Shown here: positions 9,084 to 41,768 of the stretch, in pieces | Position numbering within the stretch: position 1 is the first letter of the stretch | Layout: each line of letters starts with the position of its first letter | Origin: Penicillus capitatus | Lineage: Eukaryota; Plantae; Chlorophyta | Direction of reading: 5' to 3' | DNA length: 64,000 nt | Assembly: GCA_965649825.1 (NCBI GenBank) | Contig: OZ287694.1 | Coordinates: forward strand, 2,430,902-2,494,901 | Notes under the pieces: generated by a model | What the model was told of the DNA's origin: nothing | What the model saw: only the letters and a program-made list of their open reading frames with translations | Databases searched by the model: none | Translations under genes and position numbers: made by a program

Positions 9084-10026
9084 CTACTTCACAGACGCTT
9101 CCTCCGTTTCACGCTTCTGTTTCTTCCTGGGGACGTCGAGCTGGTTCTCTTCGAGATCCAGATCCACGTGTGTCACGTCGAGGGCACAACACTGAGCGAC
9201 GTCCACATCCAACAGATCCGCCAGACACGGATGCGTTCGGCCGAAGTCCCCGTGGACGAACTCCTTTATGTAGCATCCCGCCGACGTGCAGACCTCCAGT
9301 GTCAGATACCGTCTGTGGTGCCTGACCGCGGCGGCTTTCATCCAGTGGACCACTTTGCTGCGTGCCGCGTTGGCCCGACGGTGCGCCACTCGAAGGGGCG
9401 TCCACTGCGTGACATCCACGTCTCTGAGGCCGTTGAGTTGCTCTATGTCACTCGACGTGACGTCCCGGGAGATCCACACCAGTGCGAGATAGCTCTTCTG
9501 CATGTCTTCCTCCCCGGACTTCATGCAGAGAATGGAATCCCTTTTCGCCACCTGCCAGTCCCGAACGAGCACGCCTGTAGTCCGATCCGACGTCTCTCTC
9601 AGCAGCTGCTCCAGGTCCTCCCTACGATCCAATCCAGAACGCGATAGATAGGGCGCTGGGGTTGGAGGCGCGAGACGTGGCGAGTGTCTGGGGATGAGGG
9701 TTCGTGATCTCGACAGTGAAAGGCCGTCCTGTGCCCAACATTCGAACATCCATGTCTTCCCGACCGGCAGGAATGAATTTGACGCCGTCGCTGGTGACGA
9801 TTTTTCCGACAGCCGCAGCGACGACGGACTCGACGGACGACTCCGCCATGACGGTGCCATCGCGCAACACAAATGGCGTCTGGCTGATATCTCGGCGGAG
9901 CTTGAGATAGCGTCCGTTCAGATACAGCCGTTGCACCTGCACCTGTCCCTGAGGAACAGCTCTCCGTTAGGTGCGTCATCTGCCAAGAGAAGCGCGCCGT
10001 ACGGAAGAGGGCCCTGTGCTCGACAT
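9084..10026 (-). CDS. PUS10: tRNA pseudouridine synthase Pus10, catalytic domain only; 3 exons (in-frame ATGs also at 10044 and 10053)
   Basis: GRYLKLRRDISQTP, AGREDMDVRMLGTGRPF (catalytic Asp present), QWTPLRVAHRR, AGCYIKEFVHGDFGRTHP. Two GT-AG introns restore the frame. Confidence 0.88.
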
Positions 10027-10073
10027 AGCCAAAATGGGCGACATCGAGATCATCGCGAAATCAAACCCCGAAG

Positions 10074-10864
10074 ATGTTCAGACCGAAAGACTCGAAGGGT
10101 ACGCTCACTCTTCCTCGACAGCCGCGATGCGCAGCGTCATGATGCAGAGACGATTCGAGAATCGCGTCGGGGTATTGACAAGAGTACGAGAGGTGCGGCT
10201 CACTCAAAATGGACTGGATAAGTGTAAGGCATGTGTTTTGCAGAACTCGACCGCGAGTTGAATCGACTGAAGATAGAGGAGAAGAAAATGATTCAGCAAA
10301 TTAAGCAAGCTGCACGACAAGGAAACGATGCTTCCACCCGCACTTTGGCGAAATCTCTCGTCCGAGTGCGTCAACAGATGACGAAACTGACATCAGGAAA
10401 GGCGCAACTCCATGGCGTCTCTACTCAGATAATGGTCCACACGAGGCACGGCCTTCACGCGTCAACGAATGAGGGTGGTGTAGACTGCTGGATCGACGCA
10501 TACTGTTGGAATGGCAATGAAGAATGCCGGTAAGGCGATGGAGGCGGTGGGCAAGGCGGCAGATATGGAGAAACTCCCTCAGACGCTGGCGCAGTTTGTG
10601 AAGGAGAATGAAAAGTTGGATCTGATGGAGGAGATGATGGGAGATGCCGCGGAGGCTGCCTTTGATACGGACGGTGTCGATGAGGACGCAGATGCGGTGA
10701 TGAATCAAGTGCTGGACGAAATCGGCATCGATATTTCGGCCGAGCTCGCAAATGCCAATGCTCCAAGAAAGCCGAGAGTGGCCGCCAACACCCCCGCAGC
10801 TGCAGAAGACACAACAGCAGAAGAGCAGGAACTAATGCGCAGACTGGGGGCATTGAAGAACTGA
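10074..10864 (+). CDS. VPS2: ESCRT-III subunit VPS2/CHMP2; 4 exons
   Basis: Spliced product MFRPKDSKETIRESRRGIDKSTRELDRELNRLKIEEKKM...LAKSLVRVRQQ...MNQVLDEIGIDISAEL...LMRRLGALKN. Confidence 0.9.
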
Positions 10865-11630
10865 CCCCTATACGGGAAACACGCGCTTCAGTCTACTGTC
10901 ATCCCTGGAAAACGTACTCTAGCGTCAGGAGAATGTCCGCTGTCTTCATGGTGTGTCTCTGTGGATATTGAAAGGTGCGTTGATGTGACGTTCTCCGAGA
11001 TCGGGCCCTTGGGCATCTGTCGTACAGCAGGATTTCAAGTCGGACTGGCATGTAATGTGTTTACTTCATGTACGAAAATCGTCGATTACCTTTAGATGCC
11101 CACCTGCTCGTCAAATCGCATTGACGGGTGCGTCTATCATCGTTTGTCAAAGCGTTCGGCAAGGTCCACGGATAGGCAAAACTGCCCAAACCTGACAGCA
11201 ATGTCGACTTCGGCCTCATACTCTGCACCATTCGAAAGATCTCCGAACGCAAACCTAGAAGCCATCGGGAAAAGACTGATATGATCAGCCTCGGCTGGAT
11301 GACAGTCATCTACTAAGAGGAGATCCAAGACAGGTAGAAAGCACATCCAGTCGATCATGCTAAACGGATCTCTGGAAGAAATGTGGGCTGCAACGATATC
11401 GCTTCGCTATTCGTTTCCCTGAGTGTCACGCTGACCCGAGCAAGGGAGCCCTGGTATTGCCAACGCGCAGCTATTTGAGCACCACCTTACTGAGACTCGG
11501 ACAGTGGTATGATCGCAACGGCTCTTCTCTCCGGGAGATCGACTGATGTGACTACCGTTAGGTATACGTTTACGTCGACCTTCTAGTACCCTAAAGGCGT
11601 TGTTTCGATTTTGGTGTGCGCGTGTCAAAG

Positions 11631-12334
11631 ATGTCGGCCCTCATGATGTCGTCGTTGCCGAGTCTCTTGCTGCCAAAGAGACTGACGCCGTTGAAGAAGG
11701 GAAGGAAGGGACGCAAATCCCGTCGCGCTGCACAACGCGCACGTGCCGCTGCGGAGGACGAGACAAAAAGCTCAACATCGCCGACAACAGCAGGAGCCGC
11801 AAAAGGCCCCTCTGTGCCAGAAAGCACGGGAGGACCATCGACTCCACCCACGACGCTCTCTTCATCCACCTCATCGTCATCTGCCGTGACCTCCACGGCG
11901 AAGACCGTCGGTGGACGAATCTTAAGTCCGTCGACGAAGTCTCTCCTTCCGTCAAGAGCTTTGCCGTCTAGAGTCGATGACGATACTCGGGGGTGCGCCG
12001 GAGTTGATCATCGGCCGCGCCGCCATGATCTCCATTCCGTCAGTGTTCTTCTACGAGATGATCAAACAGGAAGAGTTCCTGCAGCTGATCAGGGATAACA
12101 AGTTTCTGTTTCTGACTGCCATCGGTGTCCTCTCTTTGGCATCTTTGATTCCTATTGCGATGGGAGCCAAATACGAAGACTTCGGTGCGTGCTTTTGCAT
12201 CCTCTCACTCTTTCTCACTCTTTCATGTAGGATTCATGACGACGCATGCCGAATTGATCAACGGCCGTGCGGCAATGATAGGTATCATCGCTATCCTGGC
12301 TTTGGAGGCGAGGTCGGGCACAAATTTCTTCTAA
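11631..12334 (+). CDS. ELIP: Early light-induced protein (ELIP/LHC-like); 3 exons
   Basis: Ser/Arg/Lys-rich transit-like N-terminus; GAPELIIGRAAM, SLASLIPIAMG, THAELINGRAAMIGIIA. Introns 11911-11971 and 12185-12230. Confidence 0.85.
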
Positions 12335-12645
12335 ACACGGGATTCGGCATTGCTGGGTGGGATACATCTGTATCGGCATTGTATGGAGCGAGGCGTGTGA
12401 TTGGATTCTTTCTCTCCCCTTAGCAGAAGCGGTTGGGATCACACTTCAATGAACAACGAAAGTGTGACTGGAAATGACTTGCATGATGTCTTGACCTCTT
12501 AGATGGGATGGGTATGCCTCAAAAGCAACGGACCCATTAGCCGCCACATGACCCACGTGTTGTTGATGTTGTTGTCGACCAACATACATCTGTTGATGGA
12601 TGCTATAACCGTCATTGTTACGAAAAGATACATGTCTGTGTGCTT

Positions 12646-14364
12646 TCACGATGATTTCTCCATTTCGAGCGTTTCCATTTTCCTTCCACCGTATTCCGAA
12701 TCGTCATCTCTTGTCTCGCCACTTGCATTCTGTACCGTCGTCATCTCTGATGACATGGCATGGTCTTCCACGGCACGAGAGCTACTGCCTTGGGCACCAC
12801 TCTCTTTCAACAGTGACTGCGTGGCATCATCCTCCTCCTCCGTATCCAATCTCTTTAGCTGCGTTCCTTTCTTCCACCTAATAGACAGATCATCTCTTTC
12901 GCCTCGGCGCCGCCACAGCTGACGCCGCTCACTTATGCGAGAGCTTGGCAGGAGATCTCAGAATCTTGCCCATTTGCTGGATGGCACCGGAAGTCACGTT
13001 CGCCACTTGCTCTTTGCTTCGAGACATACCGTCTTCGAAATGATCTAAAGCGATAGACATTGCCACAATGTGATCTCGTGCTGTTGGTCTGCAGGGAATA
13101 CTTGAGACGTCTTCCACGACATCCCGGACGTCCAACATGGTGACCACGTTCTTGAGGAACCCGTCCCCAGGTTCGTTCTCGTCCATATAGTCCTTCGGTG
13201 GGAAAGCATAGGCGAAGAGCAGAGCCGCAAAGAACATCTCCACACATATACAGAAATCTTGAACGCCAGCAGAGACGTCATCGGTATCGTAAGTCGTCCA
13301 CTTCTCCATTTTGATGATTCCAAACGATAAGACGATCGAGATGGCGATGGACTGCCAGAAGGTGAGGAAGACAATGGCCTTGATCAAGAGAAACTTGGCG
13401 ACGGGCCGAATGGGGTTGAGATCTTCATAAGTGGCACGGTAGAACATAACGAGGCAATAGATCGCCCATATCTGCGAGAAGTTGTTGACGAGAAAGATCC
13501 AAAACCACACCCCTTTCACAGATCCGACACAGTAGAATCCCCATGCCTCACCAAACATTCCGACGCCTGCCAGCAGCGGCCTCAGAATCACGTAATTCAG
13601 AATTCCCTACGCGTCGCATCACACGTCCCATCACCATGGCCGGCCACCCAATCGATTCGCCTTACCTTTTTGCACTCCCACAGATAGTCTCGTCCCATCT
13701 GCCACCGCCGACAGAACAGCTGAAACCCCCAGATGTGTTCCAACTGGTCATGCCTTTCGAGATGATCATCCAGATCTCCCACCTAGGCGTCACGATTTGC
13801 AACCGCTCTTCTCTGCAGGGAGGGGCGACTTTGTGGGTGAGGTAGGCGACGAGATAACAGTAGAAGCTGTAGATGACGAATGCTTCATAGCATTCTCGTA
13901 AGGGATCGACGTAGACGTGTGCGTGGAAGAATCTCAGCGATAGCCAGGCGTCCAGGGAATAGATAGGTACCATCAGACTGATCCGAATGACATACTTCTG
14001 CAAATCTGGCCGGGAGTAGTAAGCCAAGTGCATGGCCACCTAAGGACGCCGTCTTCGACTCGTTTATTTTGAGCAAAGATGTCACACTTCGTAAATGGAG
14101 ACAGGAAGTGTGAGAAAGACAAAAATTCCGCCATAGAACCACGCTAGAATGGGATTGTTCAACTCTTGAGAGAAGAGACGAAAAGTGTGACCTTGGTATC
14201 GAACGGAGAAACCTGTGCTCGAGAATTTCCAGACGATAGCCGGGAAAGCAATTAAGACCATCAACACCAGAACAGCCCAGAGCTGCGAGGAAAGAAGTCA
14301 GCGTCAAAGAGGGAGGGTTCAACGGGAATACCCAACGCAGGACGCGTCGAGCCGGATAGACCAT
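12646..14364 (-). CDS. TMEM184/LAZ1 family (organic solute transporter alpha-like) membrane protein; multi-exon
   Basis: AWFYGGIFVFLTLPVSIYEVAMHLAYYSRPDLQKYVIRISLMVPIYS, PLRECYEAFVIYSF, KFLLIKAIVFLTFWQS, QDFCICVEMFFAAL. Confidence 0.9.
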
Positions 14365-15124
14365 AGGACACTTGTCTTGGAAGCACAGAAAGGCAATGAG
14401 AATCCGAGAATGTTCGAAAATGAGAAATGCAGCGGCCGCGTGTAAGACGCCTCCTCAATGGCCGCGTATCCGACAGAGGGAAAGCGGTTCCCAAATCGAG
14501 CAACGGAAGAGACGCCGAGCAAACCGCCGGAGCTGTATGGACTGTCTACGAGCGACGGCTGCTTCGATGGGCAAATCCGTAGAAGGATGGGGACAGTCTT
14601 GAGGTCTTTTTCTCGACTGTGCTTCGTTTCTGTCTTGTGGACGCGAGTCGCGCCGCCTTAGAACGCGTTCACCTGTCAATGGATCACTGCAAAGAACGTC
14701 TAACGAAGAGAGCGAACAGAAAAGTGAGCGTTCGAGTATCTATTCTTGGAATTGTTCATCAAGGCGCATCGTGCTCGAGTAGAGAGGGTCTTTGCACAGG
14801 TCGGTGGACCTTCAGTCACATCAGAGTCGTGTGCAGATCTGAGGAGACAATAGTTCGTCCCTCCATCCGGATGGCGTTGATGGTACAGGAATGGCACAGC
14901 CTGCACCCATGTCACCACAACAGAAGACCGCGTAGCGAGCGTTGTTTGATGTGACCCATAGGAGTCAGAAACGCAGCATCTCATCTCCTGGACATATTGG
15001 TTACACCGTAGGCATCTCGAGAGGTATCGTCATCATCTTAAAAACCACATCCGCAGCACTTGCTAAGTACCGATCACAGAACGACCGGCCAGATCTGTTT
15101 CGTGTGTGTCTCCTAGAGTGGCCC

Positions 15125-15499
15125 TCAGTCATTGACGAAGGCGGTTTTCTGTTTGGCTGGGATCGAATCTGGATTTTGTCGGAGGCGTTTCATGTCGTCT
15201 TCGTGCACGGGGAGGCATTTGTTGCGACACATCATGTGACATTCGAAGCCCAAGGGATGCAGTCGTTGCTTCAGCTCTGTATAAGCTTCGGCCGTCATGC
15301 CGCTCACGGTGTAGTACAGAATGAGTGGCGACGAATCGACGACACGCTGTATCTTCTTCGTATTCAGACTTCGATTCAGCTTGCGCACGAAATCCAACTT
15401 CGACATGGAAACGTCCGTCTATCACGACTCTGCCGTCTGGACACGGAGACTCGAGAAATGACGATAATGTGGAAAATGGCGGCGAATGGCGAGACGCAT
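15125..15499 (-). CDS. Probable mitochondrial ribosomal protein uL10-like; 3' end uncertain (alternative stop at 15001 if a 40-nt intron is used)
   Basis: MRLAIRRHFPHYRHFSSLR (mito-targeting-like) joins via a 45-nt GT-AG intron to LDFVRK...VVDSSPLILYYTVSGMTAEAYTELKQRLHPLGFECHMMCRNK, which fits the uL10 N-terminal pattern. The C-terminal half is not clearly recognisable. Confidence 0.5.
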
Positions 15500-15723
15500 C
15501 GACGACGGCCGCCGTCGATGATCGTCCATCACATCCTTCTGACATCGACAATACTCAGCAACATGTGGCGGCGTCGATCTTTGCCGCGCGATCGCGTTCG
15601 CGGCGACGACATCGCTCGCAATCAAAGCAGCCGTTAATATTTATACTTTCTTCAAAAACGCTTGCTTCATTTGACGCCGTTTGATGTTCCGTTATCAAAT
15701 ACATGTCGATGCTCCCACCCTTT

Positions 15724-16451
15724 TTACTTGTTCATCATGTTGATGGGGCGAACGCCTTGATGTCTCTCTTTGCTCAGACGATCGGCCAGTTTCCAAAGCG
15801 ATTCCTTCTTTCCATTCGCCACTCGACGCATACGTTCCACTGCTTGAATCGCAGCTTCCTCTTTTCCAAGCACACTGATCTGCATCTCCACTTCATCGGC
15901 AATAATCTTGCGTCTCCGTACAGCCGTCCTCAGTTTGTGACTCACAGCTCTTTGGCCTTTATACTTATGAGAGCGCGTCAACTCACGCAGTCCAGGCAAT
16001 GCGCCAGATGCCGTCTTTACCTCCTTCGTATACTCGATGTAGACATCCTGGACCCCCATATCTGCCATACCTGTCTGAGGAAATGGGATAGGCATGGGAT
16101 CGAGAACACACCTCTCATGTCTCTGAGGCGTGTAAGAAGGCAGGATGGATGATCACGTTCGTGAACGAGTGGAGATTGCAGGGCAGGAAGGAAGAGTGTG
16201 TCTGTTGGGATGGGTTCTGCTCCCGCGTCCTTTTCTTTAAAGTCCGAAATTAGCCAGATGAGGTGATCGAGTTTGTCATTGATCAGGGTGACAGAGTGTT
16301 TAACCTCTGCCATGTCTTTCTCGATTCTGTACCTCCATTCCGCATCGCTATAGTCTGTCGCGGTGAACGACCCGTCCATTTGAGGCGAGTGATGTGACGT
16401 CACGCTGCTCGCGGGTAGAAACGACAGGGATGACGCTGCCCCATTACACAT
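15724..16451 (-). CDS. Coiled-coil + GCR1_C-like DNA-binding domain protein; 2 exons
   Basis: WRYRIEKDMAEVKHSVTLINDKLDHL (coiled coil), 41-nt intron, then GVQDVYIEY..LPGLREL..RRRKIIADEV..GKEEAAIQAVERMR..SLWKLADRL, resembling the GCR1_C consensus. Confidence 0.6.
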
Positions 16452-17203
16452 CGGGATCAGAAGAGAAACGATGTCACCTACCAGCCACCGTTCAGAAAAG
16501 CACGAGAGAAAAACCGAAAGCAAGATAGAGAATGTTCTCACGGATACGTATGGCAATAAGACGGGTGGAATAGAGATCTGATCGATTCTCCAGGAATAAC
16601 ACTTGTTGGATGACAGCTGCTTAGGAGCTTCCCCAGGAGAGGATGATGCGACTTTACAGCATTGCACTGGAGGACGATGCTTGCCATAACATCACACAAG
16701 CATGCATGAACAAAGGGCACTTCCTGACGCTTTTAGAGGACATGATCTTGTGGATCATTCGAGAAATGAAAACGCGATGGGCGAAGAATGAAACTGTCTG
16801 CTTATGGACAACATACAACACCATCCAACAGCCATTCCTAGCAAGATTATTTATCCTTAAGATCGTTGCTGGCCGGTTTTAGAGAATGAGATCCGCTATC
16901 GATAGGATATGGGTATGCAGCGAGACGTTAACGTGCCCTTGATGTCGACAGCGACGGGGCCAGTCCAACAAGCTATGACACGTGCATGCTTCGGTTGGAG
17001 CTGGGCGAATGTTTTTGATCCACTCCATCCAAAGATGCGCGTACGGTCCGGCGGCGGATACGCAGCAGCGCGGTCTGACATTGTAGCGATTCTCCTGCTT
17101 CCTCCGCCAACCGTCACTTAATTAAGCGGCTCAGTTTGACCGCTGTTCTATTTCTATTCGCGTTTGTCTTTGCCTTCGTCGTTTTGGACTTCATTCTCAC
17201 GAC

Positions 17204-18425
17204 ATGTCGTCGTTGTGCGGCACTGATTGCGCTTCATGTGGTTGTCTCGAAGACAAGAACGACAAGCGCGTGGTCGCCATTCCCCAGCCACCGCAATTGT
17301 CTGGCGAACAAGACGACTGCCCCATCGCTGTCCGTCGTTATTTAGAACGGATAAACGGGTTGAGCACAGAAGAATGCATGGAGAGAGGATTGAGTTTCCA
17401 TCCCAAAGCGGACGATGTTCTCCTGACAACGGGTTCCAAGTGCGGAACGGCATGGACGCAACAAATAGTGCACGGTCTTCGGTCTGGCGGAGACATGGAT
17501 TTCGACGACGTCGACGCCATTATTCCATTCCTGGAATACTACTGCGATCAAGACGATCAAGCAGAACTGGAATGCACCCAACCATACGCACCGCCACGAC
17601 TCTTCAAGACGCATATTACCTACGATGCGACCCCGCAAGGATTCGGCAAATATATCTTCGTGACTAGGTGCGTTTCGCATCAGGTGCTTTCGCCAGGGAG
17701 CTAAAGTGATGAGGTGCTTTACAGGGATCCTAAGGACGCGGTTGTTTCCTTTTATTATTTTCATTGCGATTGGCTGTTCGAGGAAGATACCATCTCTTTG
17801 GACAGCTTTGTGGAATGGATGGTCATTCGTGACAATGTGCCCTACTCATCTTTGGCCAACGCTACTCAACTTCAGCACATGAGTAAAGCAAAATACCCAT
17901 CACTATCGGCTCTTCACTTGTGGCCTGCAGTGTCGTGGTTCCCCTACCGCAAAGACGCAAATGTCTTGTGGCTGCACTACGAAGACATGAAGGAGGACTT
18001 GGCCTACTGCATCCGTCTCATTGCCGAGTTCCTCGATATCGCCGCCGACAATCCAAAACTGCAGAAGATCGTGGAGCAGCAGGTGATGCACTCTCTCTGA
18101 TATCTAACTCCTCTCTCTATGCCTTGTGTAGTCCACATTCGATTTTATGAAGAACCACAGGTCCAAGTTCGATGCTCACCGCATCAAGGCTGCCAGGAAC
18201 GAAGCCATGGGTCTGCCGCGCGACAGCGGAATGAAAGACAATAATGGCAGGGTCCGAAAGGGTCAGACGAAAGAGGGGATCAAGCTTCTCTCTGAAGACA
18301 TGAACCAGAAGATGGACGCCAAGTGGAAAAGCTTTGTCGAGCCCGTCGTCGGCTACAGCAGCTACGCAGAGATGCGCAGAGCCGTTAATAAAGAGCTCGG
18401 GAGAACCGTCGGTATGGACTGCTGA
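17204..18425 (+). CDS. SULT-family sulfotransferase, copy 2; 4 exons
   Basis: TTGSKCGTAW, RLFKTH, RDPKDAVVSFY, LWLHYEDMK, RVRKGQ. Confidence 0.9.
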
Positions 18426-18431
18426 GTACGT
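17931..18431 (+). repeat. Near-identical copy of 23754-24252 (3' half of sulfotransferase copies 2 and 4)
   Basis: Direct sequence comparison: exon 3, intron 3, most of exon 4 and bases after the stop match with only scattered differences. Confidence 0.9.
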
Positions 18432-19448
18432 AAAGATATTCTTTCCTTTTCTGCATCTGTTGCCGGAGTGATTTCATCCACCGAGCAGAGAACCACACGA
18501 TCCATCGAGCTGCTCTCTTTCGCAGGCAGCGGTGATCTTCAACGCGTAGAAAGTGTTCTTTTGCCGACAAAAGTCTCACGACGTCCTCTTTCCGTTAACA
18601 ATCTTAGCTTCAACTGCTCAAGGATGATCTATGACACTTCGTAGCGTTTAAGGAGATTGATGATGTGCATGATGCGTGCATGGGTCGGGTCGGGCGTCGT
18701 GACGGAGTCAATGGATACGGTTTGTGATACGATAGAGCGTCCCTTCCGTTGTGAAGAAGATCTGTACGCTTTCGATTGCATGCGTCGTATCTCCTCGCCG
18801 TTCGTCATCGACACCTCGGCTGTGTGGACAACTCGCCGACGTCTCGAATTCGCACTGCACGACGGTTCTTCGATCCGTCCCCTTCAATTCGCAGTTCCTT
18901 GACTCTCAGAAATCACCTCCGTTTCGCGCTTTGTTTATTGGCATGGAAGACGAAGGGGCGAACCCATGTGCTGTGCGCCGGTTTGATCTCTTCACGTGCT
19001 GCCTCGAGCAATGACTGGTCGTAGATTCAGTTTCCCGACGGAGACGAGGATTCGAGAGTATTTCGACGCCAGAGGCTCGAGCTACCAAGGTAAGCGTCAT
19101 GGCAGTATCCTTGACGCACTTGACTCGATCTCTATTTTTAGCTGCTCTGCAGCTGCTGCAGGCATCGCCACTCGCAAAGAGGCATAAGAAAAAGGACGGG
19201 AGCTCCTACGTCGAATGCAGAGCCCAGTGGTCTGTCTGTAACAGAAAATTCAAGATACACTATCTAAAGTGACATGACAGGGGTGATTGAACATTGCATA
19301 ACGAGAGTGTGTTGTCTACAGGCTGTGGTTTCTCGTAAAGATGGCGATGCGTTGCGAGCTGTGGTCATGGGAGAAGCTTGCGAGAGATTCGTGGGACGCG
19401 TGCCCGAACATCGAAATCCATCAACGAAATCTGAGACGCCACTTTGAG

Positions 19449-20974
19449 ATGGCAGACGCTTTGGGCCTCGAGCAGCTCGTCGGCGATTCCTTCGTGCATT
19501 CAAACAACGACACGGCGCTCGAAGGCATCCTAGAAGGATACGCAAAAGAGCCTGCGCATGGTGTAACAGTCCAGGCCAAAGGTATGACCAAATGTTCAAC
19601 GCCTTGCCGTCTCTACTGTGGTATCAGGAGGTTTGATGGAGAGGCATGACATCTCCAGTCTCTACAAGAATAATTTGTTGCTTGGTATGGGGATCAATGC
19701 TCAGTGCTTGTATTCGGATACGTCTGACCTCTTGCCGTTTGCCACCGGAGAAGACAATGAGAGAGAAGCCCATGTGCAGCGAACGATGTCTGAGATACTG
19801 CAACGCATTGCTGACAGAGAGAGTACCTTTGAGCAGACGGTCCGTCTGAAGAATCTCTTCTTGGTACGTCATTGTCCTTCCTCAGCACCGATGTGGAGAT
19901 CGCTTCATGCAGCTCTGGTTGGATTCTGCGCAACCTTGCCTGTTCAAAGTCGGCGGATGTCTCGTGGCCAGTCCCGACAACGTCTATCGGTTTCTAAAGG
20001 CCTTGGAAGAGGGTTTCGTATGGCTCAGTGGTACGGAGCCGTCGATTGTCGAAGTTCTGACCGGGAGATGTGCGAAGCCAGATTTGACACCGAGGAAGAA
20101 GACCCTTTTGCGTTCTGGATACGGACACAAGTATCTGACAGGACTCAACGAGCTGTACAGAGATCAACAGGCTTTGCTCGGCATCCAGTCTGTACAGAGC
20201 ATCAGATCCGATCCCAGAATTGGAGCGTGGGAATGGTCATTGAAGCAAAACGACCAGAAACACATAACGGCAGAGGGCGGAGGATCTCAGCCACAGCTCT
20301 CTCCTGCAGAAGCCTCCCCCATGGACCCCGATGCCATGAATCCTGAACCCTTCTGGATGAATATGGATCCTCCGCCGACGCAACGCAATCTGGTGCTCGA
20401 AATGATGCAGAAGGTGCTGGAGGACATCGAAAGTCTAAAGGCTGCTCAAGGTTCCTTGCATGCAAAGATGGACCGTCTATTGCGTCTGCTTGACACCGAC
20501 ACGGCGTCCAGATCTGGAACAGAACAGGAGAGAGCAAGTGGCACACCAGATGTTTCCTCTGGCGGATTTGAGTATGCCTCTCTGTCGAGTCTCAGGAAAC
20601 TGAGTTCCATGAGTATGGAAGATCTGGTTCAGGAATGGACGGTCGGGTGCACATACCGAGGGCAGAAGTTGGGTCCGCTCTCGCACTTTGATCAGCTCAG
20701 GATCGATGGACTGGTGCAATACAATAAGTCGATCAAATCATCCCTGCTCATAAGGAGAACGCTTTTCAGTTTCTTCAGAGAGGTCTTTGCGCATGTGGGA
20801 TCGCGCGAAGAAGCCATCCACCGAATAGACGATGTTCAGAGATCTCTGGGGAAAGATGGGGAGCCCGTTTCGCTGTATGGTCTTTACAAACACGTCAGGA
20901 AATGCAGGAAGAACAGAGTACCTTCTTTCTTTGAACCAGGAAGATCTGGCGAGATCTCCCGAACCCAACCTTAA
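19449..20974 (+). CDS. Crypton-derived protein: Crypton/Ndc10-like N-terminal domain + coiled coil + GCR1_C-like domain, no recombinase catalytic core; 3 exons (in-frame upstream ATG at 19341)
   Basis: Introns 19582-19627 and 19864-19912. RESTFEQ..LFLLWLD..FKVGGCLVASPDNVYRFL..KYLTGLNELYRDQQALLG..RSDPRI resembles the CryptonF N-terminus. MEDLVQEWTVG..GPL..IRRTLF..GSREEAIHRID..SLYGLYK resembles GCR1_C. Confidence 0.62.
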
Positions 20975-21461
20975 CAGTATCGCCCCATCGTCTTATGTCT
21001 TGCACGAATAATGCGCCTGAGCATTCGATCCAGTGACGGCACGATTGTAAGAATGCCCAAGACGGGTAACAGCAGCTGTATTTGGAGCCCAACTGCATCC
21101 GTCACGCGGCACCATACCGGATCGACACGCAATGCATGAAGAGTCGTTGGCAGGCCTGACGGATCTCACTCATGCCGAGCTGTAGAGGCAGGACCTGTCG
21201 TGAGAGAGGGAGTTGCTATGGGTTTGTGCATTGTCTGCAGCGATTCTCACGGTCGTCGTCTGTCGTGGTTTCTTAATGGAGGTCGACGGTGAAGTCTCTA
21301 GCCGTACGCCAACAGACGTCGCTTTCGTCGGTTAAATCTCTGCCTTTGCCCAATCGCCTCGATGAGCGAACGTAGACGGAAGTCTACGACATCGGTGGTT
21401 TCATTCACCGCGTTGTCACGGACCATAAACATCTTTCGCGTCATTCGCAGCACACAAGACG

Positions 21462-22589
21462 ATGTCTACGCCCGACAACGGGGAGTGTTCGCTGGGTCTT
21501 CTGAAATTCTTTGAACGTTCCCGTGGACTGCTCAATCGCGAGGCGTTGATGAAGGGACTGCGATTTCAACCTCGGCCCAGCGATGTCCTGTTGACGACGG
21601 GGCCCAAGAGCGGCACCGTCTGGGTGCAGCACATTCTGCACGGGCTCCGTTCTGGAGGGGACGTCGATTTCGACGAGATCGACACAGTCTTTCCATTTGT
21701 CGAGCTGTACTATGGATACAACGACCAAGGCGACCTGGATGCCGCACAGCCCTTTGAGCCGCCACGATTCTTCAGAATGCATGCCGATTACGAACAGACA
21801 CCCGGATTCAACAAACGCATCGTCGTAACAAGGTCATCCATCCCCCTTCATCCTCGCTCCCCTCATCCTGTCTTCTCAGAGATCCTAAGGATGTGATCGT
21901 ATCGGCCTATTTCTTTTTCAAGGAATGGCTGTTGGACGAGGAGGTCTCGGTGGATGAGTTCGCGGAGTGGATGTTTGTGAAGGAAGGCGTCACACTTACG
22001 CCCTTTGCCAATGCTCCAAATCTGAAACATTTGAGTGAGACGCCGCCACAGATATGTGTCGACAGTTATGTATTGCCGGCTTCTGTAGTCTCTTGGTTTC
22101 CACACCGTGGCGATGACAACGTCTTGTGGCTGCACTACGAGGATTTGAAGGAAGACCTAACGGGCTGCATACATCTCATCGCGAAGTTTCTCGATCTGGG
22201 GGCGAATGACGCGGAGCTGCTGAAGCGTGTGGAGCAGCAGGTAACATTCCGCCCATCGGTCACCGTTTCCATACGTTGTGTGTATGTGCATCCAGGCTTC
22301 GTTGGACTTCATGAAAAAGCATCATACCAAGTTTGATTCGCATCATGTTAAGATCGCCTTGAATGAAGCTCTCGGTGTGCCACGGGATCGTGGAATCGGC
22401 AACTGTAAGGGAAGAGTTCGGAGTGGACAGACGAAGGAGAGTGCGAAGTTTCTGTCAAAAGAAACGCGTGAGAAGATGGATGCAAAGTGGAAGACACTGG
22501 TCGAGCCTGTCGTGGGATACGGCAGCTATGAGGAGATGCGAAGGGCTGTCAATGCAGAACTCGGAAGACGTGTCGGCGAGGAGAGCTAG
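21462..22589 (+). CDS. SULT-family sulfotransferase, copy 3; 4 exons
   Basis: TTGPKSGTVW, RFFRMH, RDPKDVIVSAY, LWLHYEDLK, RVRSGQ. Confidence 0.9.
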
Positions 22590-23085
22590 CTGTCTTCCTA
22601 TCTGCCTTACCCTGATCGATTATTTCGCGTTGTCTGATGACTATGATGGTTTTGCGCATACCATATCGCAGTTGGATGTCTGGTGTTTCTGTGACTGTCA
22701 TGGAATGTGTGCGTTTCTTGTTTCGTGCTTGAAGTGTTTGAACATTTGTGGGAAGAGTAGATTCCTGCCAAACGTACGGCGGTCCGACGGGCGTATCCAG
22801 CGGCTGAAATGACGGTTTGGCGTTTTCGCATGGCCCTGTCTCGTTGAGAGGCATCTCCGTACTGACCTCGCGAAACGCTTCGGATAATCTCTTTCTGGAC
22901 GGCGCTCTTCCTGTTTCTTACCTGTCCGTTCTTCGCTTCTTTAACCGACTCTTCTTTGCATTCTCTGACGTGCTTTCGTTGGACGTCTTGCGAAGCAAAC
23001 AGACTTGCACCTACAAATTGGCATATATAGACTAGACCTGCAGAATCTTACGTAATCTGCAATCTCCGCCGTTTTATTCGCGAAG

Positions 23086-24246
23086 ATGCTGCCTCTTTTA
23101 ACCAACGTGACCACAGATGTCTTTTCCCCCGTAACATGCTCGTCCGCACTTCGAGCGTATTTTCAGCGTACAGGTGGATTGAGTACTAAGGAAGGCGTGG
23201 AAAAGGGACTGGCGTTTACACCCCGGGGTGACGATGTTCTCTTGTCGGTCGGCTCGAAATCGGGTATGACCTGGACGCAACAAATTGTCCACGGTCTTCG
23301 TTCTGGTGGAAACATGGACTTTGAAGACTTGGATACCATCATACCCTTTCTCGAATACTTTTACGCCCACAACACGGAGAACGATTTGGGCCAACACGCT
23401 CAACCGTATGCTCCACCCCGTCTGTTCAAAACGCAGGTTCGTCACGACTGGACACCGAAAGGATTCGGCAAGCAAATTGTCGTGACGCGGTAAGCGCATC
23501 GTCTTCGGGCGTCGTCGTTGCCGAACGTGTTTGTTTCACAGGGATCCCAAAGATTCCATCGTGTCGTTGTACTTCTTTCATCGCGATTGGCTCTTCGACG
23601 GAGAGGAGATTTCGTTGGACGACTTCGTCGAATGGGCAGTTATTCAAGAAGACGTTCAAGATGCGCCATACGCCAACGCCTATCACTTGAAACACCTGAG
23701 TCCGTACCGTTTTGATCTATGATTCCGCTTACTTAGCATCGCCTGCTTTTCAGTCTCGTGGTTTCCCTACCGCAAAGACGCGAATGTCTTGTGGCTGCAC
23801 TACGAAGACATGAAGGAAGACTTGGCCTACTGCATCCGTCTCATTGCCGAGTTCCTCGATATTGCCGCCGACAATCCAAAACTGCAGAAGATCGTGGAGC
23901 AGCAGGTGATGCACTCTCTTTGATATCTAACTCCTCTCTATGCCTTGTGCAGGCCACATTCGATTTCATGAAGAAGCATAAGTCCAAGTTCGATGCGCAT
24001 CGCATCAAGGCTGCCAGGAATGAAGCCATGGGTCTGCCGCGCGACAGCGGAATCAATGGCAACGTTGGAAGGATCCGAAAGGGTCAGACGAAAGAGGGGA
24101 TCAAGCTTCTTTCTGAGAACATGAACCAGAAGATGGACGCCAAGTGGAAGAGCTTTGTCCAGCCCGTCGTCGGCTACAGCAGCTACGCAGAGATGCGCAG
24201 AGCCGTTAATAAAGAGCTCGGGAGAACCGTCGGCATAGACTGCTGA
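23086..24246 (+). CDS. SULT-family sulfotransferase, copy 4 (catalytic His replaced by Gln); 4 exons
   Basis: SVGSKSGMTW, RLFKTQ, RDPKDSIVSLY, LWLHYEDMK, RIRKGQ. Confidence 0.88.
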
Positions 24247-24252
24247 GTACGT
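23754..24252 (+). repeat. Near-identical copy of 17931-18431
   Basis: Direct sequence comparison, including the shared intron. Confidence 0.9.
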
Positions 24253-24488
24253 TTCATCTGCAGATGATTCAAAGTGATCAAACCGCCAGATCGTTTTCTT
24301 ATTTCGCCGTAAACAGACGTTAACCAACACGCAGACGATACGCAGCCACTTTTAGATGAATCCCTCCGTATTCTTTTGACAAATCTGACGAGACGTTGAC
24401 GGTGATGTCGACATCACGGCCAGATGTAATACATCTGTTTTCGCTATCGCGATCAAACGCCTTCTTCCCGTGCGGTTCTCGTTGGGAG

Positions 24489-26032
24489 ATGGCACCTCGA
24501 AAGAAGCCGACTCGGAAGCCGACGGCCTCCAAGAATACACCGACTCAAAACGTGGCACCTATCGTCGAGGACGTCGTCCACGCTGATGCCCCTCTTCCCG
24601 CCGCAACTGACGACAACGACGACAAGAAAACGTCGCCCGTTCTACACCAGGAAGCGTCGGCATCGGAATCCGCCACGGTCGCCCTTCTCGATCTTGCTCA
24701 GACAACGTCTGGCCGCGCACCGAACGCAGCGTCCATCGACCGACGTTCCTCAAGTGTTTTACTGACTTCAGCCTGGACGGATCAGACGAAGCGCATTTGT
24801 ATGCGCAGGGAGTCTGCCTGAACGCGTCTCTGTCGGTCAAGAGAGTGCGCGGCGACGATCAAGGCCACGCGAAACGGGTCGCCTCGAAGACGTTGCTCGT
24901 CGACGACGTAGACCGAAGACGATCCGTATGACATCCATCTCCGAAACGCTATTGCGTCACGCTCAACCATATCTACCCTCTAGATATCGTGATCCTTTCG
25001 GCGGCCCTTGTGCTCTGCGTTGTAGCATGGCTCTTCCTCATCTCTTACAGCAGAGATGCGCTTCTAAGGCAGAGGCAGCCTAACGATCTCGCACGCTGCC
25101 TCTCACTTCCTCGTTGCTGTGAAGGGAAGGAGGCGTCGAGGAGGTATCGACGATGGAGACATGGGAGGCTTTGAGTGAGCAACTCAGAATCGATATCCTC
25201 AATTCTGTTCAACAGCAACTACAGGAATGGTCAACAGCGCAGTCCACGGTACGCTGTCAGCTGGCATCTCCTCGAGGCACCGATTGCGGTCTTGTGCATA
25301 TGATTCAGTGCTCGAGTAAGGCGCGTACGGTTCACACAGGATATGTGTTGTCCCATTCCACAGTGATGGCACACAGAATTCCGTGTACGGTGTATCCGCA
25401 GCTGCTGATGCACTGTCTGATCTATCGCCTCCTCCATCCATTCTTCGCCCTCCTTGGGTTTCATTCCATCCATCCCTTAGCAGATCAGGTCCCTTGTCGC
25501 GTTTCCCCGAGGCCTGACCGTTTCTTCGGCGACAGATGCTGCTGCATGCAGCAGTGGGTGATCGAATATGTTTCCCACTTGCCGGAAAGACGGGTCACAT
25601 CACCATCGGTCTCAAAACGCCCATCACTGTGAAGAACATCGCCCTTTGGCATCCACCTACCGCCAACACTGCCACCTCCGTCTTTACCCACGAAGTGGAT
25701 GTACATGGGTATGCCAGTCTTCTGACGCGCCTTAAGCATCTCATCTGCCGTGCATCTATACAGGTACATGCATGATGTAGATACAAGAGTGCCTCTCGGT
25801 AGACATCGACTCCATCGGAATGTTACAGCATGGCAGATACTCAACGTTTCGACCGACGATTTTCTTCAGAAGCTTCATTTTCAAGTACATCCGTATCCAT
25901 GACATCCATCCACCTCATACGAGATATGTCACACTCCAGTTTTTCTCAAATCATAGTCACGTGGATCATACCTGTGTCCACGGCATCCAGATTCGGGGAG
26001 AGATCTTGCCGTCCATCGAAGCTGAGGAATGA
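24489..26032 (+). CDS. SUN-domain nuclear envelope protein (plant C-terminal SUN type); multi-exon
   Basis: Basic N-terminus MAPRKKPTRK, TM ILSAALVLCVVAWLFLI, coiled coil, then IHPLADQ..GDRICFPLAGKTGHITIGLKTPI..LWH and FFSNHSHVDHTCVHGIQIRGE (SUN signature). Internal splice sites only partly resolved. Confidence 0.8.
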
Positions 26033-26104
26033 AACGACTGGCATGTACTGTCTGTCTGTGAATCTGTACGTACGTGCGGACGTTTGACTTTCCATTCGGA
26101 AACA

Positions 26105-26844
26105 ATGGGAAAGAACCAAATGTACAAAGCGTTGCAACGTGCCAAACACGTCGCTGCCATGGATGGCTCTCTTCTCGAGACAGAAGACGGAACCGTATCT
26201 TTCTGCGCTGTCCCATCCCGTGCGCTTCTGGGACGACCCGTAGGTCGACGCCTCCTTCCACACCCCTGAGTGGCATGCAGCTCGAATGGCGACACTGCAA
26301 GTTCCCTGTGCCCTGTGGTCTCCCTCGTGCTCTTCATGGCTCGTGCTGTACAGCATCAACGCATGTCGTGGGAGGAATTCAAGCAGAAGATCAAGAAGGA
26401 CGCCGAAAGCGAAAGCAAACGACAGGAGGAGGAAGAACGTGTCATGTGTAAGACAGGATCCTCCTACCACGAACAGATGCCGTTAGCTGAATCTAGTGGA
26501 GTACAGAGCACAGCTGGCAGCCGATCGTGAGAAAAAGATGAACAAGAGTGACATCGACTGCAAACCAGGACGCAGAAGTCGTCACCATCGAATCTCACAT
26601 CCTCGTTATCGAGTGCTGCATTGCAGAGAGAAAGAGTGAGAAAGAAAGGCGGCGGCTGAAAAAGAAAGATCATAAAGCAAGACACGAGAAGAAAGGCGGG
26701 ACACACAAAGTGCGACAGATCAGTAGACGACGCGCTCGAGGTTCTGTGCCGCAGTCGAGGAGAAAGAGATCGCCGTCCAGTGGATCGATGCGTCTCTCGG
26801 ACGATTCTTCGCCGATTCGATTGTCGGAGTATCTGAAATCTTAG
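26105..26844 (+). CDS. Conserved green-lineage Lys/Arg/Ser-rich protein (FAM133-like); multi-exon
   Basis: MGKNQMYKALQRAK..EDGTVDASFHTPEWHAARMATL..SWEEFKQK..PIRLSEYLKS, matching a conserved plant protein of unknown function as I recall it. Confidence 0.75.
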
Positions 26845-26932
26845 AAAGGCGTCGGCAGAGCTGATGGGTGTAAGGATTCCGTTAACGAGCGTTTTGAGCT
26901 CGCGCTTCAAAATTAAGTGCATCGATGCGGTG

Positions 26933-28231
<1,299 letters not shown>

Positions 28232-29179
28232 TGTTCGCGTCTTTCTTGTTCCACGTCTGCGAAAGATCTGATTCGAAGCGGACGGGATTTTCGGGAACCT
28301 GATGAAAGGACAACTGTACGACGCCATGTGTAGAAGCACGCCTTTCGGACAGACGGACGTTGACAGACGCGTTCAATCGGTTTGTACATAATTCCATATT
28401 TACATGGCTTTTGCGTTCACATGTGCCATAAGCAAACAAGAAAAAAGCATTCAATGAAGGTTCACAACATAATTAGCACGGCTGAACTAATCACTTATGT
28501 GAGATAATATTGCGCGAAATCGCGACTTCGGCCATTTGGGATCGGACTTTCTTCGACGACCATACTGATGGCCGATCAGTAACGGAAAACTTCCAGTTTA
28601 CAGGGAGGATGTGCCGACATGCTGTGCATTCCAGAGAATGGTTTCTTCTCTCATTTCTATCCTCTCGACGTTTTCTTCGTATGCTACGTGGTGCTCCACG
28701 TCCTTCATGTTTTCCAGTCTTCTGATGCACATAATGGAAGCACCTTGAACACGGACGCGATATCTCTTCGACCCAGATAACTCCGAGAAACGCCTACCGT
28801 AGCAAAGTAATCGTGACGGTATGTTGTCTTGAGGTCTTGCCGATCTATCTGGCGCCGACCATGACCCTTCCCGCATTAGCGATGGCCGAAAAATTCGAAA
28901 CCGGGTGATCGCGGTTCCGGCCTTTGCACCACATGCTTGATGCGTGGTCGGTAGTCGTCCTCGACGAGTACCGCCGAACCGAGAATATACGAAAAATGCT
29001 TCCGCGTCTATCTTCGAGGTTCAAAGCTCCGAAACCATTTTGTCACGCGAAAGTTATGTATGCAAACGGACGTACGTAAAACAGACAGCGGTCTTTCAAA
29101 GATGATCTGTCTTGTACAAACCCCTGTTCTTTCACCCCCAATTTTCATCACGCCGTGCTTCATTCACGTCATGCTGACG

Positions 29180-29599
29180 TCATGGGACGTTATGTTGGCT
29201 TGAATGATCTCCTCTCCTTCGCCTTCTCCTTCCTGACAATTTTTTGGGTTTTAGGCAGTCTTCCTTTGTTTCATTATATTTGAGGAGCCAGTGAAGGAGG
29301 ACGCCATGCTCGTCCTTATCCTTCTTGGCGTTATACGCCATGACCAGCGACTTTGTGCCGTATTTCTTGGCGACTGCACGAAAAAGCTTTGGGTTCTCCA
29401 GTTCTTCGACGTCCGAATCGATCCGTCGTGGTCGACCGTCATCGCCCGATGCGGACGGTCCGCCAGCAGACGGGGTTTCGGCAACATTTGAAACTGTTAC
29501 ATGCTTGGAAAACCTGTGCAAAGGAAAACCTCGACGTAACGCGCGTAGAAGAATCTTACCGTTTTGGGCGTTGTGAAACGTTCGTAGTGAAGTTCGCAA
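29180..29599 (-). other. Unassigned open reading frame within the segment between the hemC direct repeats
   Basis: 139-codon ORF with no in-frame ATG and a protein-like core (ELENPKLFRAVAKKYGTKSLVMAYNAKKDKDEHGVLLHWLLKY); no family recognised. Confidence 0.3.
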
Positions 29600-29671
29600 C
29601 GCAAGTGACGAATCAGACGGATGTTTGTGTCAGAGGAAAGCTTCACGTTTAAAGAGCAAAAGGTCACAATC

Positions 29672-29961
29672 GGTTCACGTTCATGTCTTTGCATGCCACA
29701 GGTGACATGACCCGTCGTGAAAGCGCCCCTTCGAAGACGGAACCCTTGGATTACGAGGCAGCCACGATGTGACAGGCTCAGTCATTCTGACAGTTTGAAA
29801 TGCAGGTTAGGCTTTAATGACGTTAGTTGAGAATTCGGTGCCGTCGGAAGAACATGGCGTCACGATGTGACGTGTCTTGTTATCCAAGGGTACTGTCTCC
29901 GAAGGGGCGCTTTCACGACGTGTCATGTCACCTGTGACATACAAAAACATGAACGTGGACC
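29672..29961. repeat. Imperfect inverted repeat (arms about 100 bp); foldback/MITE-like or hairpin RNA
   Basis: 29672-29773 (GGTTCACGTTCATGTCTTTGCATGCCACAGGTGACATGACCCGTCGTGAAAGCGCCCCTTCGAAGACGGAACCCTTGGAT..) is the reverse complement of about 29858-29961, with a few mismatches. Confidence 0.85.
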
Positions 29962-31027
29962 CATCTGAACCTCTAGCTCTGTAATACGTGAAGCCTTTCA
30001 CTGACACAAACATCCGTCACTATTAAATCAAGTTGAATTGTCAGGAAGACCATCTGCCGCATCAGAGAGCGCAGATGCGGCGAGCAACGCATGAACGGGT
30101 ACTCCGTAACGGAATCTGTCAGGCAGATGTCCGATGTTCTGCACGATCGATAGCGTCTTGCACTGATCTGTCCCTCCGGTTGCGAGCTGCAGGGACTGGG
30201 GAGCTTATGTCATCGTCTGCCTCTGTGGATGCCTGGCCGACGGAGATTAGCGGGCTTCGTGGCCAAGACACTTGACGAACGATACGTCGCGCCACGTTCC
30301 CTTCGCTTGCGAAAGAGCGAAAAAGTGTGAACTGACTCGCTTTGAGTGAGATGCTTGTTCCGGGAGTGCTCGTTTGCAGTGTCCGCATCTCTATCCCTTC
30401 GACGGAGCGTCCTAGCCAACGCACCTGAATCGATAACAACCTTCATGATGTGACTGACGGCCGTCTATGCAAATGGGATAAGGACTGAAACGAGCATTAA
30501 CAGAAAGAATACGTAACCTCTGTCCTGCATGACCGACGATTTTTCTGCTGGAGACAGCCTTCGTCTATTTTCCCAGAATCCAGGTGTGTTCTACCGTGAT
30601 CTGCCAACGTCCTCCATGATGCAGAGGTTTGCTCCTCTTTTTTGTTCCTAGACAGAGCATCTTCAGTACAGTGAATGGATGCACAGTTCTGTATTCTATC
30701 CTATCTTATGAAGGGGCAGATGCGGGGGTCGCTGCTAATCCCCTACCTCCGCCCAGCTGTCGCTTATGACGAATGAAGGAGTCACGACGGCGCACCGGAT
30801 CGATCTTTCTTCACTCATTCCGAACTGAGACCTTCATACAAACAGCACACAAGCATTGAGTGGTCACGATTCAGATATCGAAGCGCCGTTGCTGCAGGAA
30901 GCTGCTCGCCTACCCAGCAAACGTGCAAGGCGACCGAGTGCCAAATCTAACGATACGTCACAGACTCAAAACGCAAACAAAAGCGAACCTGTATCGTCAT
31001 GTCTCTTCAATCAAGGAAGAATGCAGT

Positions 31028-31404
31028 GCATACGTATCGCTCATGGCTTCTCGTCATGGCCTTGCTCTTTGAGCTTGTCACGCGTGGCGTAAGCCTGTGC
31101 TAAAGCGAGAGGACTGCCACGTGTCCCTATCCGGACGGTCTCTCTTCGCGTCTCCGTCACACCACAGACGCACCGCAATGCCGTGCGCGTTCGGCATCGC
31201 ATCGACGGCAGCATCGACGCTGGGATGGACCGTCTCGTCTGCAGCATTGTTCGCGTCTTCATTGTTCCACGTCTGCGAAAGATCCGATTCGAAGCGATCA
31301 GGATTCGCGGGGACCTTATGAAAGGACAACTGTACGACGCCGTGTATAAAAGCACGCCTTTCGGACAGACGAACGCACGTTGATAGACGCGTTCAATCGG
31401 TTTG
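31028..31404. repeat. Direct repeat copy 2, ending at the base before the BTAF1 ATG
   Basis: Matches 28021-28384; the shared tail GTTCAATCGGTTTG is followed here by ATGAGTGGC. Confidence 0.92.
31041..31247 (-). pseudogene. Truncated duplicate of hemC exon 1
   Basis: Encodes MLQTRRSIPASMLPSMRCRTRTALRCVCGVTETRRETVRIGTRGSPLALAQAYATRDKLK. The intron-1 donor GT is GA here, giving a stop 8 codons later, and no downstream hemC exons follow. Confidence 0.85.
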
Positions 31405-41070: not shown

Positions 41071-41768
41071 CGCAATGCGCGGTAAAGATCGAAGGAGATA
41101 GATGGTTGCATCATGTGTCTTTCACTCCTCTAGCCGCTGTCCCTCTTTTCTCAACCAAACATCTCTTGAGCGGCATAGCTCAGCAATAGGACACCGTTCG
41201 AGTCGCTGTACGCCTAGGCCACCCATCCCTTCACGTGAGATCGAATTCATGGCCGAGATTGAAACAGGCGACCTTGCTGAGGATACTGAGCTCTTCGTCG
41301 AGAGATGGACAGAATGCATTGCCTACGTAGACAAACTTCACCGCATTCTTAGCAAAGACGTCCCGTGAGAGCATTGGCCGCACGAGATTTGGTGCTGGGT
41401 TCTGGTTTCGAAGCTGACCCTTCAGATACTTGACCACGTCGACAAACCGCTTTGAACCGTCTATCTATATTCGTAAAGAGACAAAGACGATGACGCATAG
41501 ACGCAAACAGGGACAGAAGACATGCGCCGAAGCACCTTGACACGTTTCCAGTTATCCGCTGGAGGTGGAATGTTGCCAACGGCTCGGAAGTGGATGGTCA
41601 CTGGGGAAAAAAGTGTATGGGCGGAGATGCAAAGGGTCCGTGGTGGGGAGACCTTTCTCGCCAGACGTTCGAGACATGGAGGAAGACGACTGAGAACGGG
41701 CGCCGTTGTCTCGATACCACGTCGTGTCGAGCCACAGATTGCTTAAACGACGAAACCGTTTGGCGTTT

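Follow-up and report, generated by a model that had tools for sequence, protein, structure and literature searches.

The window analysed here, which is the whole 64-kb stretch of Penicillus capitatus DNA from contig OZ287694.1, carries on its + strand an intact gene (19011-20974) formed by five exons, with a product of 587 amino acids (aa). We think, with a probability of roughly 60%, that this is a host gene derived from the gene of a CryptonF-like transposon, in which the tyrosine-recombinase domain was deleted, and that its product would be a nuclear, dimeric DNA-binding factor of transcription or chromatin. CryptonF transposons, which are defined by the combination of a recombinase with a GCR1_C domain, are known from fungi as well as oomycetes (PMC3212892), and they are active in the green alga Chlamydomonas (PMC9977147). 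The original prediction for this locus, a domesticated Crypton-type gene without its tyrosine-recombinase core, is borne out by the colinearity of the gene with full-length relatives, by its single copy, by an orthologue at a syntenic site and by a ratio of non-synonymous to synonymous substitution rates (dN/dS) of 0.16. Neither a multitude of dispersed near-identical copies nor a lack of profile matches was found.

The starting point for the gene model is an open reading frame (ORF) of 355 aa at 19907-20974 (+), with upstream coding segments in other frames. Joining these segments by GT-AG introns with a start at ATG 19449, as originally proposed, gives a three-exon model of 476 aa. The two introns of this model, 19582-19627 and 19864-19912, are real and both GT-AG, which supports the claim of an intact intron-containing gene, whereas the start is most likely a different one. 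The comparison for this purpose was made with the orthologue of a sister species (locus L001, which lies in ENA assembly ERZ26696514 on a contig of 1.18 Mb; one sister lineage was compared), and in this alignment the coding-type conservation runs upstream through two extra exons to ATG 19011, the upstream exons having dN/dS values of 0.12-0.15. Judging from this conservation, the gene start is most likely ATG 19011, 438 bases 5' of ATG 19449. It is the first ATG past an in-frame stop, and the ATG, the frame and the GT donor are all kept in the orthologue. The resulting features are the following, with intron lengths in nucleotides (nt).

19011-19089, + strand: exon A, covering aa 1-26 and one further base, with the predicted start codon.
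19090-19141, + strand: intron 1, 52 nt, GTAAGC...TTTTAG, which restores the frame; it lies at the same position in the orthologue, where its sequence has indels.
19142-19268, + strand: exon B, with the basic cluster KRHKKKD, similar to a nuclear localization signal, and the motif RAQWSVCNRKFKIHYLK.
19269-19321, + strand: intron 2, 53 nt, GTGACA...CTACAG; its equivalent in the orthologue is GTGAGA...GCACAG, differing by 5-6 nt in length.
19322-19581, + strand: exon C, which includes ATG 19449; dN/dS 0.15.
19582-19627, + strand: intron 3, 46 nt, GTATGA...TATCAG, needed because exons C and D are in different frames.
19628-19863, + strand: exon D; the N-terminal helical domain (N-domain) begins in its final 69 bases (19795-19863), which encode helix 1 of this domain.
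19864-19912, + strand: intron 4, 49 nt, GTACGT...ATGCAG, which splits RLKNLFL/LWL.
19913-20974, + strand: exon E, a single open frame that runs to the TAA stop at 20972-20974.
19913-20263, + strand: most of the helical N-domain (aa 235-351); in Crypton proteins this domain precedes the recombinase domain.
20264-20395, + strand: low-complexity linker, aa 352-395, which occupies the position of the recombinase of the relatives and is without homology to them.
20381-20518, + strand: long single helix, a candidate coiled coil, aa 391-436, containing AKMDRLLRLL.
20609-20917, + strand: GCR1_C-like C-terminal domain (C-domain), aa 467-569.

In the orthologue, intron 3 (L001 9674-9721) is 48 nt long and has a GC donor. 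We take intron 3 to be non-coding because the two species differ in its length by a number that three does not divide, and because of this GC donor. The 48 nt of the orthologue could be read through in frame, which would add 16 residues. The assignment of exons A and B to another gene was also considered and rejected, since it is contradicted by the reading frame and by the splice sites, and since exon B is itself homologous to Crypton proteins.

The relationship with Crypton-type proteins was established at several levels. Run exhaustively against 1.84 billion representative proteins, phmmer gave 16 relatives in two groups, which match either the N-part (ORF residues 3-114) or the C-part (ORF residues 235-337) of the protein. 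The first group includes P0008 and P0011-15, and the second P0003-7, P0009, P0010 (E 5.7e-8), P0016 and P0017 (E 8.6e-5). Several of the C-part relatives are longer and present, upstream of the matched part, the tyrosine-recombinase signature NH.DR+LGA...W...+HY. When the Pfam cut-offs are applied (26.3 bits for NDC10_II and 23 bits for GCR1_C), NDC10_II is recognised in P0006 with 35.6 bits and in P0010 with 26.5 bits, the latter having also a GCR1_C score of 22.7 bits, just below the cut-off. GCR1_C is recognised in P0017 (26.8 bits), P0018 (23.6 bits) and P0019 (26.5 bits). A profile of the query subfamily, in which no member matches Pfam on its own, was aligned by hhalign with a profile of the Pfam-positive relatives, with a probability of 99.0%, an E value of 2.3e-18 and 105 columns. 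Because of this profile-level match and the transitive evidence from the Pfam-positive relatives, the C-part is assigned as a divergent GCR1_C domain. As to the two motif strings originally proposed for the N-part, the second (Y..gl..Ly..Q..l.G) is exact up to the G, whereas the first fits with gaps only.

Three of the relatives come from Caulerpa lentillifera (EukProt) and are the sole named members of the family. One of them is complete, g4242 (EukProt EP00210_P004445, our P0026), a protein of 901 aa with NDC10_II at residues 410-685 (53.6 bits). In BLASTP, the protein of the window aligns with it in two blocks. The first pairs aa 212-345 with residues 220-352 (39% identity, E 7e-21), and the second pairs aa 396-562 with residues 734-898 (33% identity, E 4e-19). 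The similarity extends to the other exons as well. Exon B matches the N-terminus of a Crypton-like gene from another locus (L008) over aa 31-69, with 44% identity and E values of 8e-4 to 3e-3. For exons C-D there is a weak colinear similarity, seen with L006 over aa 69-320 (E 2e-11), and residues 23-100 of g4242 match the orthologous L001 protein weakly (E 0.013). In exon D, the tblastn alignment with L002, a full-length relative described below, starts at aa 145, and L007 is 72% identical over aa 218-235. Moreover, the long helix is homologous to the AKLDRLLH helix that stands before GCR1_C in P0007, P0009, P0026 and L004. Thus, colinearity with proteins having both recombinase and GCR1_C spans from exon B to the stop codon (P0026, L002, L006 and L008), and by these alignments the whole gene from exon B on appears as a Crypton-type gene minus its catalytic middle. 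A basic motif, RAQ.S...RKFKI.YL(K/R), is common to exon B and to the N-termini of L008 (555-671) and P0026 (aa 14-32), and is not matched by any Pfam family; it may represent a small additional element for DNA binding. Other searches gave less: a word-indexed homologue search found solely the protein itself and its orthologue, the C-domain profile gave five proteins, and in a scan of metagenome loci none of the 129 pattern matches was confirmed by tblastn.

The catalytic domain is what the gene has lost. In g4242, 381 aa (353-733) stand between the two homology blocks and include the whole NDC10_II domain, whereas the protein of the window has there a linker of ~45-50 aa. Only this linker and the long helix are found between the N-part and the C-part, with no recombinase block. 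Therefore, the protein is unable to catalyse recombination. The earlier observation that no R-H-R-Y block lies between the two parts is thus confirmed, the protein being without the region that holds NDC10_II in g4242. At the DNA level, the two homology blocks of L002 are 1267 nt apart, and further loci from other metagenomes (L004, L006, L007 and L008/L009) have recombinase sequence beside the N-domain, beside the GCR1_C-like domain or between them.

The exon structure of the relatives gives information on how the domain was lost. L007, a recombinase-bearing relative, has a 47-nt intron exactly at the position of intron 4. It follows that intron 4 is older than the loss of the recombinase and that the ancestor was an intron-containing genomic copy and not a retrocopy. 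The L007 copy has an in-frame TAG within the N-domain (300-360) and may be decaying. In all the relatives, the open frame of the N-domain ends just past a ...RRH motif. L002 has an intron of 52 nt at this point, and the homology of the window protein with the relatives ends there as well (...NDQKH). The source would have been a CryptonF-like gene made of an N-terminal module, the helical N-domain, the tyrosine recombinase, the long helix and GCR1_C. From a genomic copy of it that still had its introns, an internal deletion would have taken out the whole recombinase domain (~380 aa), starting in or beside the conserved intron site and stopping before the long helix, in such a way that the N-terminal modules, the long helix and GCR1_C remained in frame. 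The linker may be former non-coding sequence. The source element is tentatively placed in CryptonF proper by its domain architecture alone.

A full-length gene of the Crypton type was found in L002 (6001-8341). Its spliced product is open, with 730 aa and an NDC10_II score of 40.3 bits, and it keeps SRFDEL, NHYDRKLGA and DRHY, which by eye are the R, H-x-x-R and Y motifs of the recombinase. It has three introns, of 52, 49 and 47 nt (set by eye), and it shares 58% identity with Caulerpa g4242 along almost the full length; a search of its protein against the PDB gave no match. The gene of the window (ctg339926, 214 kb, 26x) and L002 (ctg340446, 777 kb, 32x) both belong to ENA assembly ERZ25074695, and their tetranucleotide signatures correlate with r 0.95-0.96, a value to be compared with 0.97 for the two halves of the window. 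Because of the same assembly, the similar coverage, this correlation and the similar intron size, we think that L002 is probably a paralogue from the same genome. The contig of L002 also carries an actin gene with best PDB scores for 7ju4/8glv, by a margin of only ~6 bits; we take these entries to be Chlamydomonas axoneme structures.

The usual criteria by which a domesticated gene is recognised are transposon descent, a syntenic single-copy orthologue and purifying selection, and all of them are observed here. In a collection of 15 billion proteins, the 90% identity cluster of the protein has one member, from one contig, and tblastn across the window found no second copy. In L001 the same gene model gives an intact protein of 575 aa with 81% aa identity. 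The two genes are embedded in a collinear block of ~20 kb with ~80% nucleotide identity (window 9283-28384, L001 1-18002), and in both species the gene sits between sulfotransferase genes. The coding alignment has 0 indels in 575 codons, whereas many are found in introns and flanks, and the four intron positions are kept. The Nei-Gojobori comparison of the two genes gives a dN/dS of 0.16 for the whole gene (dS 0.56), 0.12 both for exons A+B (exon B being 95% identical) and for the N-domain, and 0.10 for the C-domain, and the highest value in the gene, 0.40, is that of the linker. The deficit of non-synonymous relative to synonymous changes is highly significant (Fisher p 3e-42). Synteny of the orthologue and dN/dS had been put forward as a check of the original prediction, and both speak in its favour. 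In addition, exon E is intact in four further alleles (contigs of 1.18 and 1.37 Mb), which makes five intact in total. As for signs of mobility, neither several copies nor insertion polymorphism was seen, only one copy, in the window as in the protein collection, at a fixed syntenic site; the terminal 4-6-bp repeats of a Crypton are not recognisable from a single copy.

These data also decide against the weakest alternative, namely a Crypton copy shortened by internal deletion, still a non-autonomous transposon or else a decaying relic, and without host function, which we regard as largely refuted and very improbable, since, even if internal deletion is the usual origin of non-autonomous elements and the absence of termini proves little for Cryptons, which lack recognisable ones (PMC3212892), the gene is a single copy at the same collinear site in a species at dS 0.56, its five-exon frame is intact in both species and its exon E in five alleles, and its dN/dS of 0.16 without coding indels differs from the case of L007, with its in-frame stop.

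AlphaFold2 modelled the 355-aa ORF with a mean predicted local distance difference test score (pLDDT) of 73 and a predicted template modelling score (pTM) of 0.41, and the spliced N-domain (153 aa) with a mean pLDDT of 83 and a pTM of 0.78. The model of the ORF is formed by a helical N-domain, a disordered linker (pLDDT <50), a 46-residue helix (ORF residues 159-204, pLDDT 83-86) and a C-domain of helices with a small hairpin. In a Foldseek search of the PDB with the N-domain, the top ten matches are all Cre recombinase over ~145-149 of the 153 residues, with E values of 0.6-2 that are not significant. These matches agree with a recombinase-type N-terminal domain and are not a proof of it. A stronger argument than the fold for this identity is the position, because the equivalent domain of g4242 stands directly before NDC10_II. 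The N-terminal domains of tyrosine recombinases such as Cre contact DNA and neighbouring subunits.

On the basis of these modules, we think that the product would act as a nuclear DNA-binding protein that forms dimers by means of the long helix (aa 391-436). The GCR1_C domain, known as the DNA-binding domain of yeast Gcr1 and of Crypton origin (PMC3212892), would provide sequence recognition, and the recombinase-type N-domain would assist it. The basic clusters of the protein, KRHKKKD and RKCRKNR, suggest import into the nucleus, where a regulatory role for the host would be exerted.

Several results have to be set against this reading. Exons A and B were predicted from conservation alone. When the 476-aa model, the 587-aa model and the orthologue were compared with Pfam, neither GCR1_C nor NDC10_II was matched, even at E<=10, and there was no direct match to a DNA-binding family; the GCR1_C domain of the original prediction therefore stands at the profile level (hhalign, 99.0%) and not as a direct Pfam match. 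Sequence searches of the PDB, by phmmer with the protein and with profiles of the N-domain and C-domain, gave chance-level matches only. The Cre matches of the N-domain in Foldseek are weak (probability <=0.72, template modelling (TM) score 0.34-0.43), and the two-domain model of 355 aa gave nothing significant, with Cre on top at E 0.5. Ndc10 was not recovered by the profile of the N-domain against the PDB nor by Foldseek with the N-domain. Thus, where a comparison of profiles and structures had been proposed as a check, the profiles match GCR1_C relatives and the structural similarity to recombinases is weak (Cre at E ~0.6, Ndc10 not recovered). Finally, purifying selection would fit equally well with a role as a regulator of transposons.

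This last point leads to the main rival explanation, in which the protein is a repressor that, as a truncated recombinase, occupies the ends of Cryptons or forms dead complexes with the intact recombinase and so keeps the resident Cryptons under control, in the manner of the KP protein for P elements or of the Tn5 inhibitor for Tn5. The presence of the recombinase-intact paralogue L002 in the same assembly favours it, as well as the fact that exactly the non-catalytic modules have been kept, and conservation under selection would fit a defence role. However, in both DNA-binding parts the identity with the lineage of L002 and g4242 is 29-39%, and therefore a shared target site is doubtful. Besides, L002 may itself be a host gene and not a mobile element, and repressors of this sort tend to be recent copies with an internal deletion, whereas this gene is old and syntenic (dS 0.56). 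We consider the repressor unlikely. A more specific form of it, in which siphonous green algae would have a conserved 'decoy recombinase', encoded by the host, that binds Crypton sites or poisons recombinase complexes, seems to us a little less likely again. If true, it would be a dedicated control of tyrosine-recombinase transposons in the same genome, such as L002. To our knowledge, a control system of this kind has not been described for the Cryptons of eukaryotes.

Another alternative to a transcription factor is a structural factor of the Ndc10 kind, acting at a centromere or at other chromosomal landmarks. Ndc10 dimerises and its structure is known. The structural-factor explanation has in its favour that Ndc10/Cbf2 is also derived from CryptonF and binds DNA without catalysis (PMC3212892), and that the recombinase domain of the family is detected by Pfam NDC10_II. 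But this domain, which defines Ndc10, is precisely what the gene of the window has lost, no match to Ndc10 in sequence or fold was found, and the neighbourhood of the gene gives no hint of a centromere. This explanation is, in our opinion, improbable. A host regulator of transcription or chromatin that was derived from a CryptonF-like gene is still the reading that we prefer, and it can be placed beside the Crypton-derived genes known in other lineages.

Yeast Gcr1, Msn1, Hot1 and Cbf2/Ndc10 are DNA-binding proteins derived from CryptonF, and the animal DUF3504 genes (ZMYM2-4, QRICH1, KCTD1 and KIAA1958) are also Crypton domestications (PMC3212892). Gcr1, Msn1 and Hot1 are host DNA-binding regulators, as the product of the gene of the window would be, with a Crypton GCR1_C domain and without recombinase activity, and Gcr1 retains a degenerate recombinase-like middle part (PMC3212892). 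Their domestication was an independent event in a distant lineage. Msn1 and Hot1 retain little besides GCR1_C. In comparison with these yeast cases, the gene of the window has kept N-domain, helix and GCR1_C, and the middle is cleanly gone. Ndc10/Cbf2, a subunit of the kinetochore complex CBF3, is Crypton-derived, non-catalytic and DNA-binding, with a recombinase-type N-terminal domain, features that the product of the gene of the window would share; it retains an inactive recombinase fold as its domain 2, whereas the gene of the window is without domain 2. The DUF3504 genes represent the opposite outcome, in which the inactivated recombinase is kept and there is no GCR1_C. Outside Cryptons, the KP protein of the P element and the Tn5 inhibitor also keep the parts for DNA binding and multimerisation and have lost the catalytic part. 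These belong to another enzyme class and are encoded by the elements, whereas here we deal with an old syntenic host gene.

Among the transposons themselves, the proteins of CryptonF elements (such as Crypton-Cn1 and CryptonF-1_cRei of Chlamydomonas) have the same order of the modules that flank the recombinase; the gene of the window differs from them in being without the recombinase, single-copy, syntenic and under purifying selection. The closest full-length comparators are Caulerpa g4242 and its counterpart L002, which are colinear with it from the N-terminal region to the C-terminus. They retain the recombinase stretch (381 aa in P0026) and the SRFDEL, NHYDR and DRHY motifs, and they are candidate mobile elements or host genes.

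The keeping of both flanking modules together with the clean excision of the recombinase is a new arrangement among Crypton domestications. In the searchable library of papers we found no report of a domesticated Crypton from green algae or from other algae, in line with the original prediction, for which no such description in chlorophytes was known. The presence of Cryptons in green algae is not new, since they are known from Chlamydomonas (PMC9977147), and what would be new for this group is only the domestication. We think that the gene represents a third outcome of Crypton domestication, beside the yeast and the animal DUF3504 types. Together with the intact paralogue L002 it forms a natural pair for studying what a eukaryotic tyrosine recombinase can do by means of its non-catalytic parts. 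It is also a candidate for a lineage-specific DNA-binding regulator in Bryopsidales-like algae, a group with very few characterised transcription factors. The general understanding of transposon domestication is left unchanged.

The window as a whole is eukaryotic and gene-dense, with ~51% G+C; for comparison, the G+C content of Ostreobium (Bryopsidales) is 52.4% versus 51-52% here (bioRxiv 10.1101/2023.11.22.568388). Judged by sequence evidence alone (the Caulerpa relatives, the similarity of the L002 gene to g4242 and the actin of L002), an ulvophyte or Bryopsidales-like green alga is the probable source. A diatom or oomycete (CryptonS) and, in view of the 50-nt introns and 52% GC, the low-GC outlier chromosome of Mamiellales were considered too; they were discarded since Caulerpa alone supplies named relatives and since the MOT1-like protein, the single housekeeping protein used for a search, gave no close named relative. 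The gene is flanked by tandem Sulfotransfer_1 genes at ~7818-8897 (-), 17411-18376, 21462-22738 and 23133-24285, and the same is found in L001. Relative to L001, the window has a 2.66-kb insertion at 28385-31048. Direct repeats of 356 bp, 91% identical to each other, border it on both sides (28033-28384 and 31049-31404), and on the minus strand both repeats contain coding exon 1 of a gene similar to porphobilinogen deaminase. The inserted sequence includes a palindromic stretch of ~400 bp (29616-30018). The insertion could be a duplication or the insertion of a mobile element.

Two long open frames are located on the minus strand near the beginning of the window. One of them, at 736-2601, has no Pfam match and is by eye cysteine-rich with a hydrophobic end, and the other, at 2718-4070, contains repeats of the Chlamydia-PMP type, with a right-handed beta-helix. 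At 31648-36970 (+) there is an intron-split gene for a MOT1/BTAF1-like SNF2 helicase, whose nearest named relative has 28% identity, and therefore the lineage is poorly represented in the protein collection. The sole Rfam/ARAGORN match in the window is a tRNA-Arg(CCG) at 41768-41843 (+).

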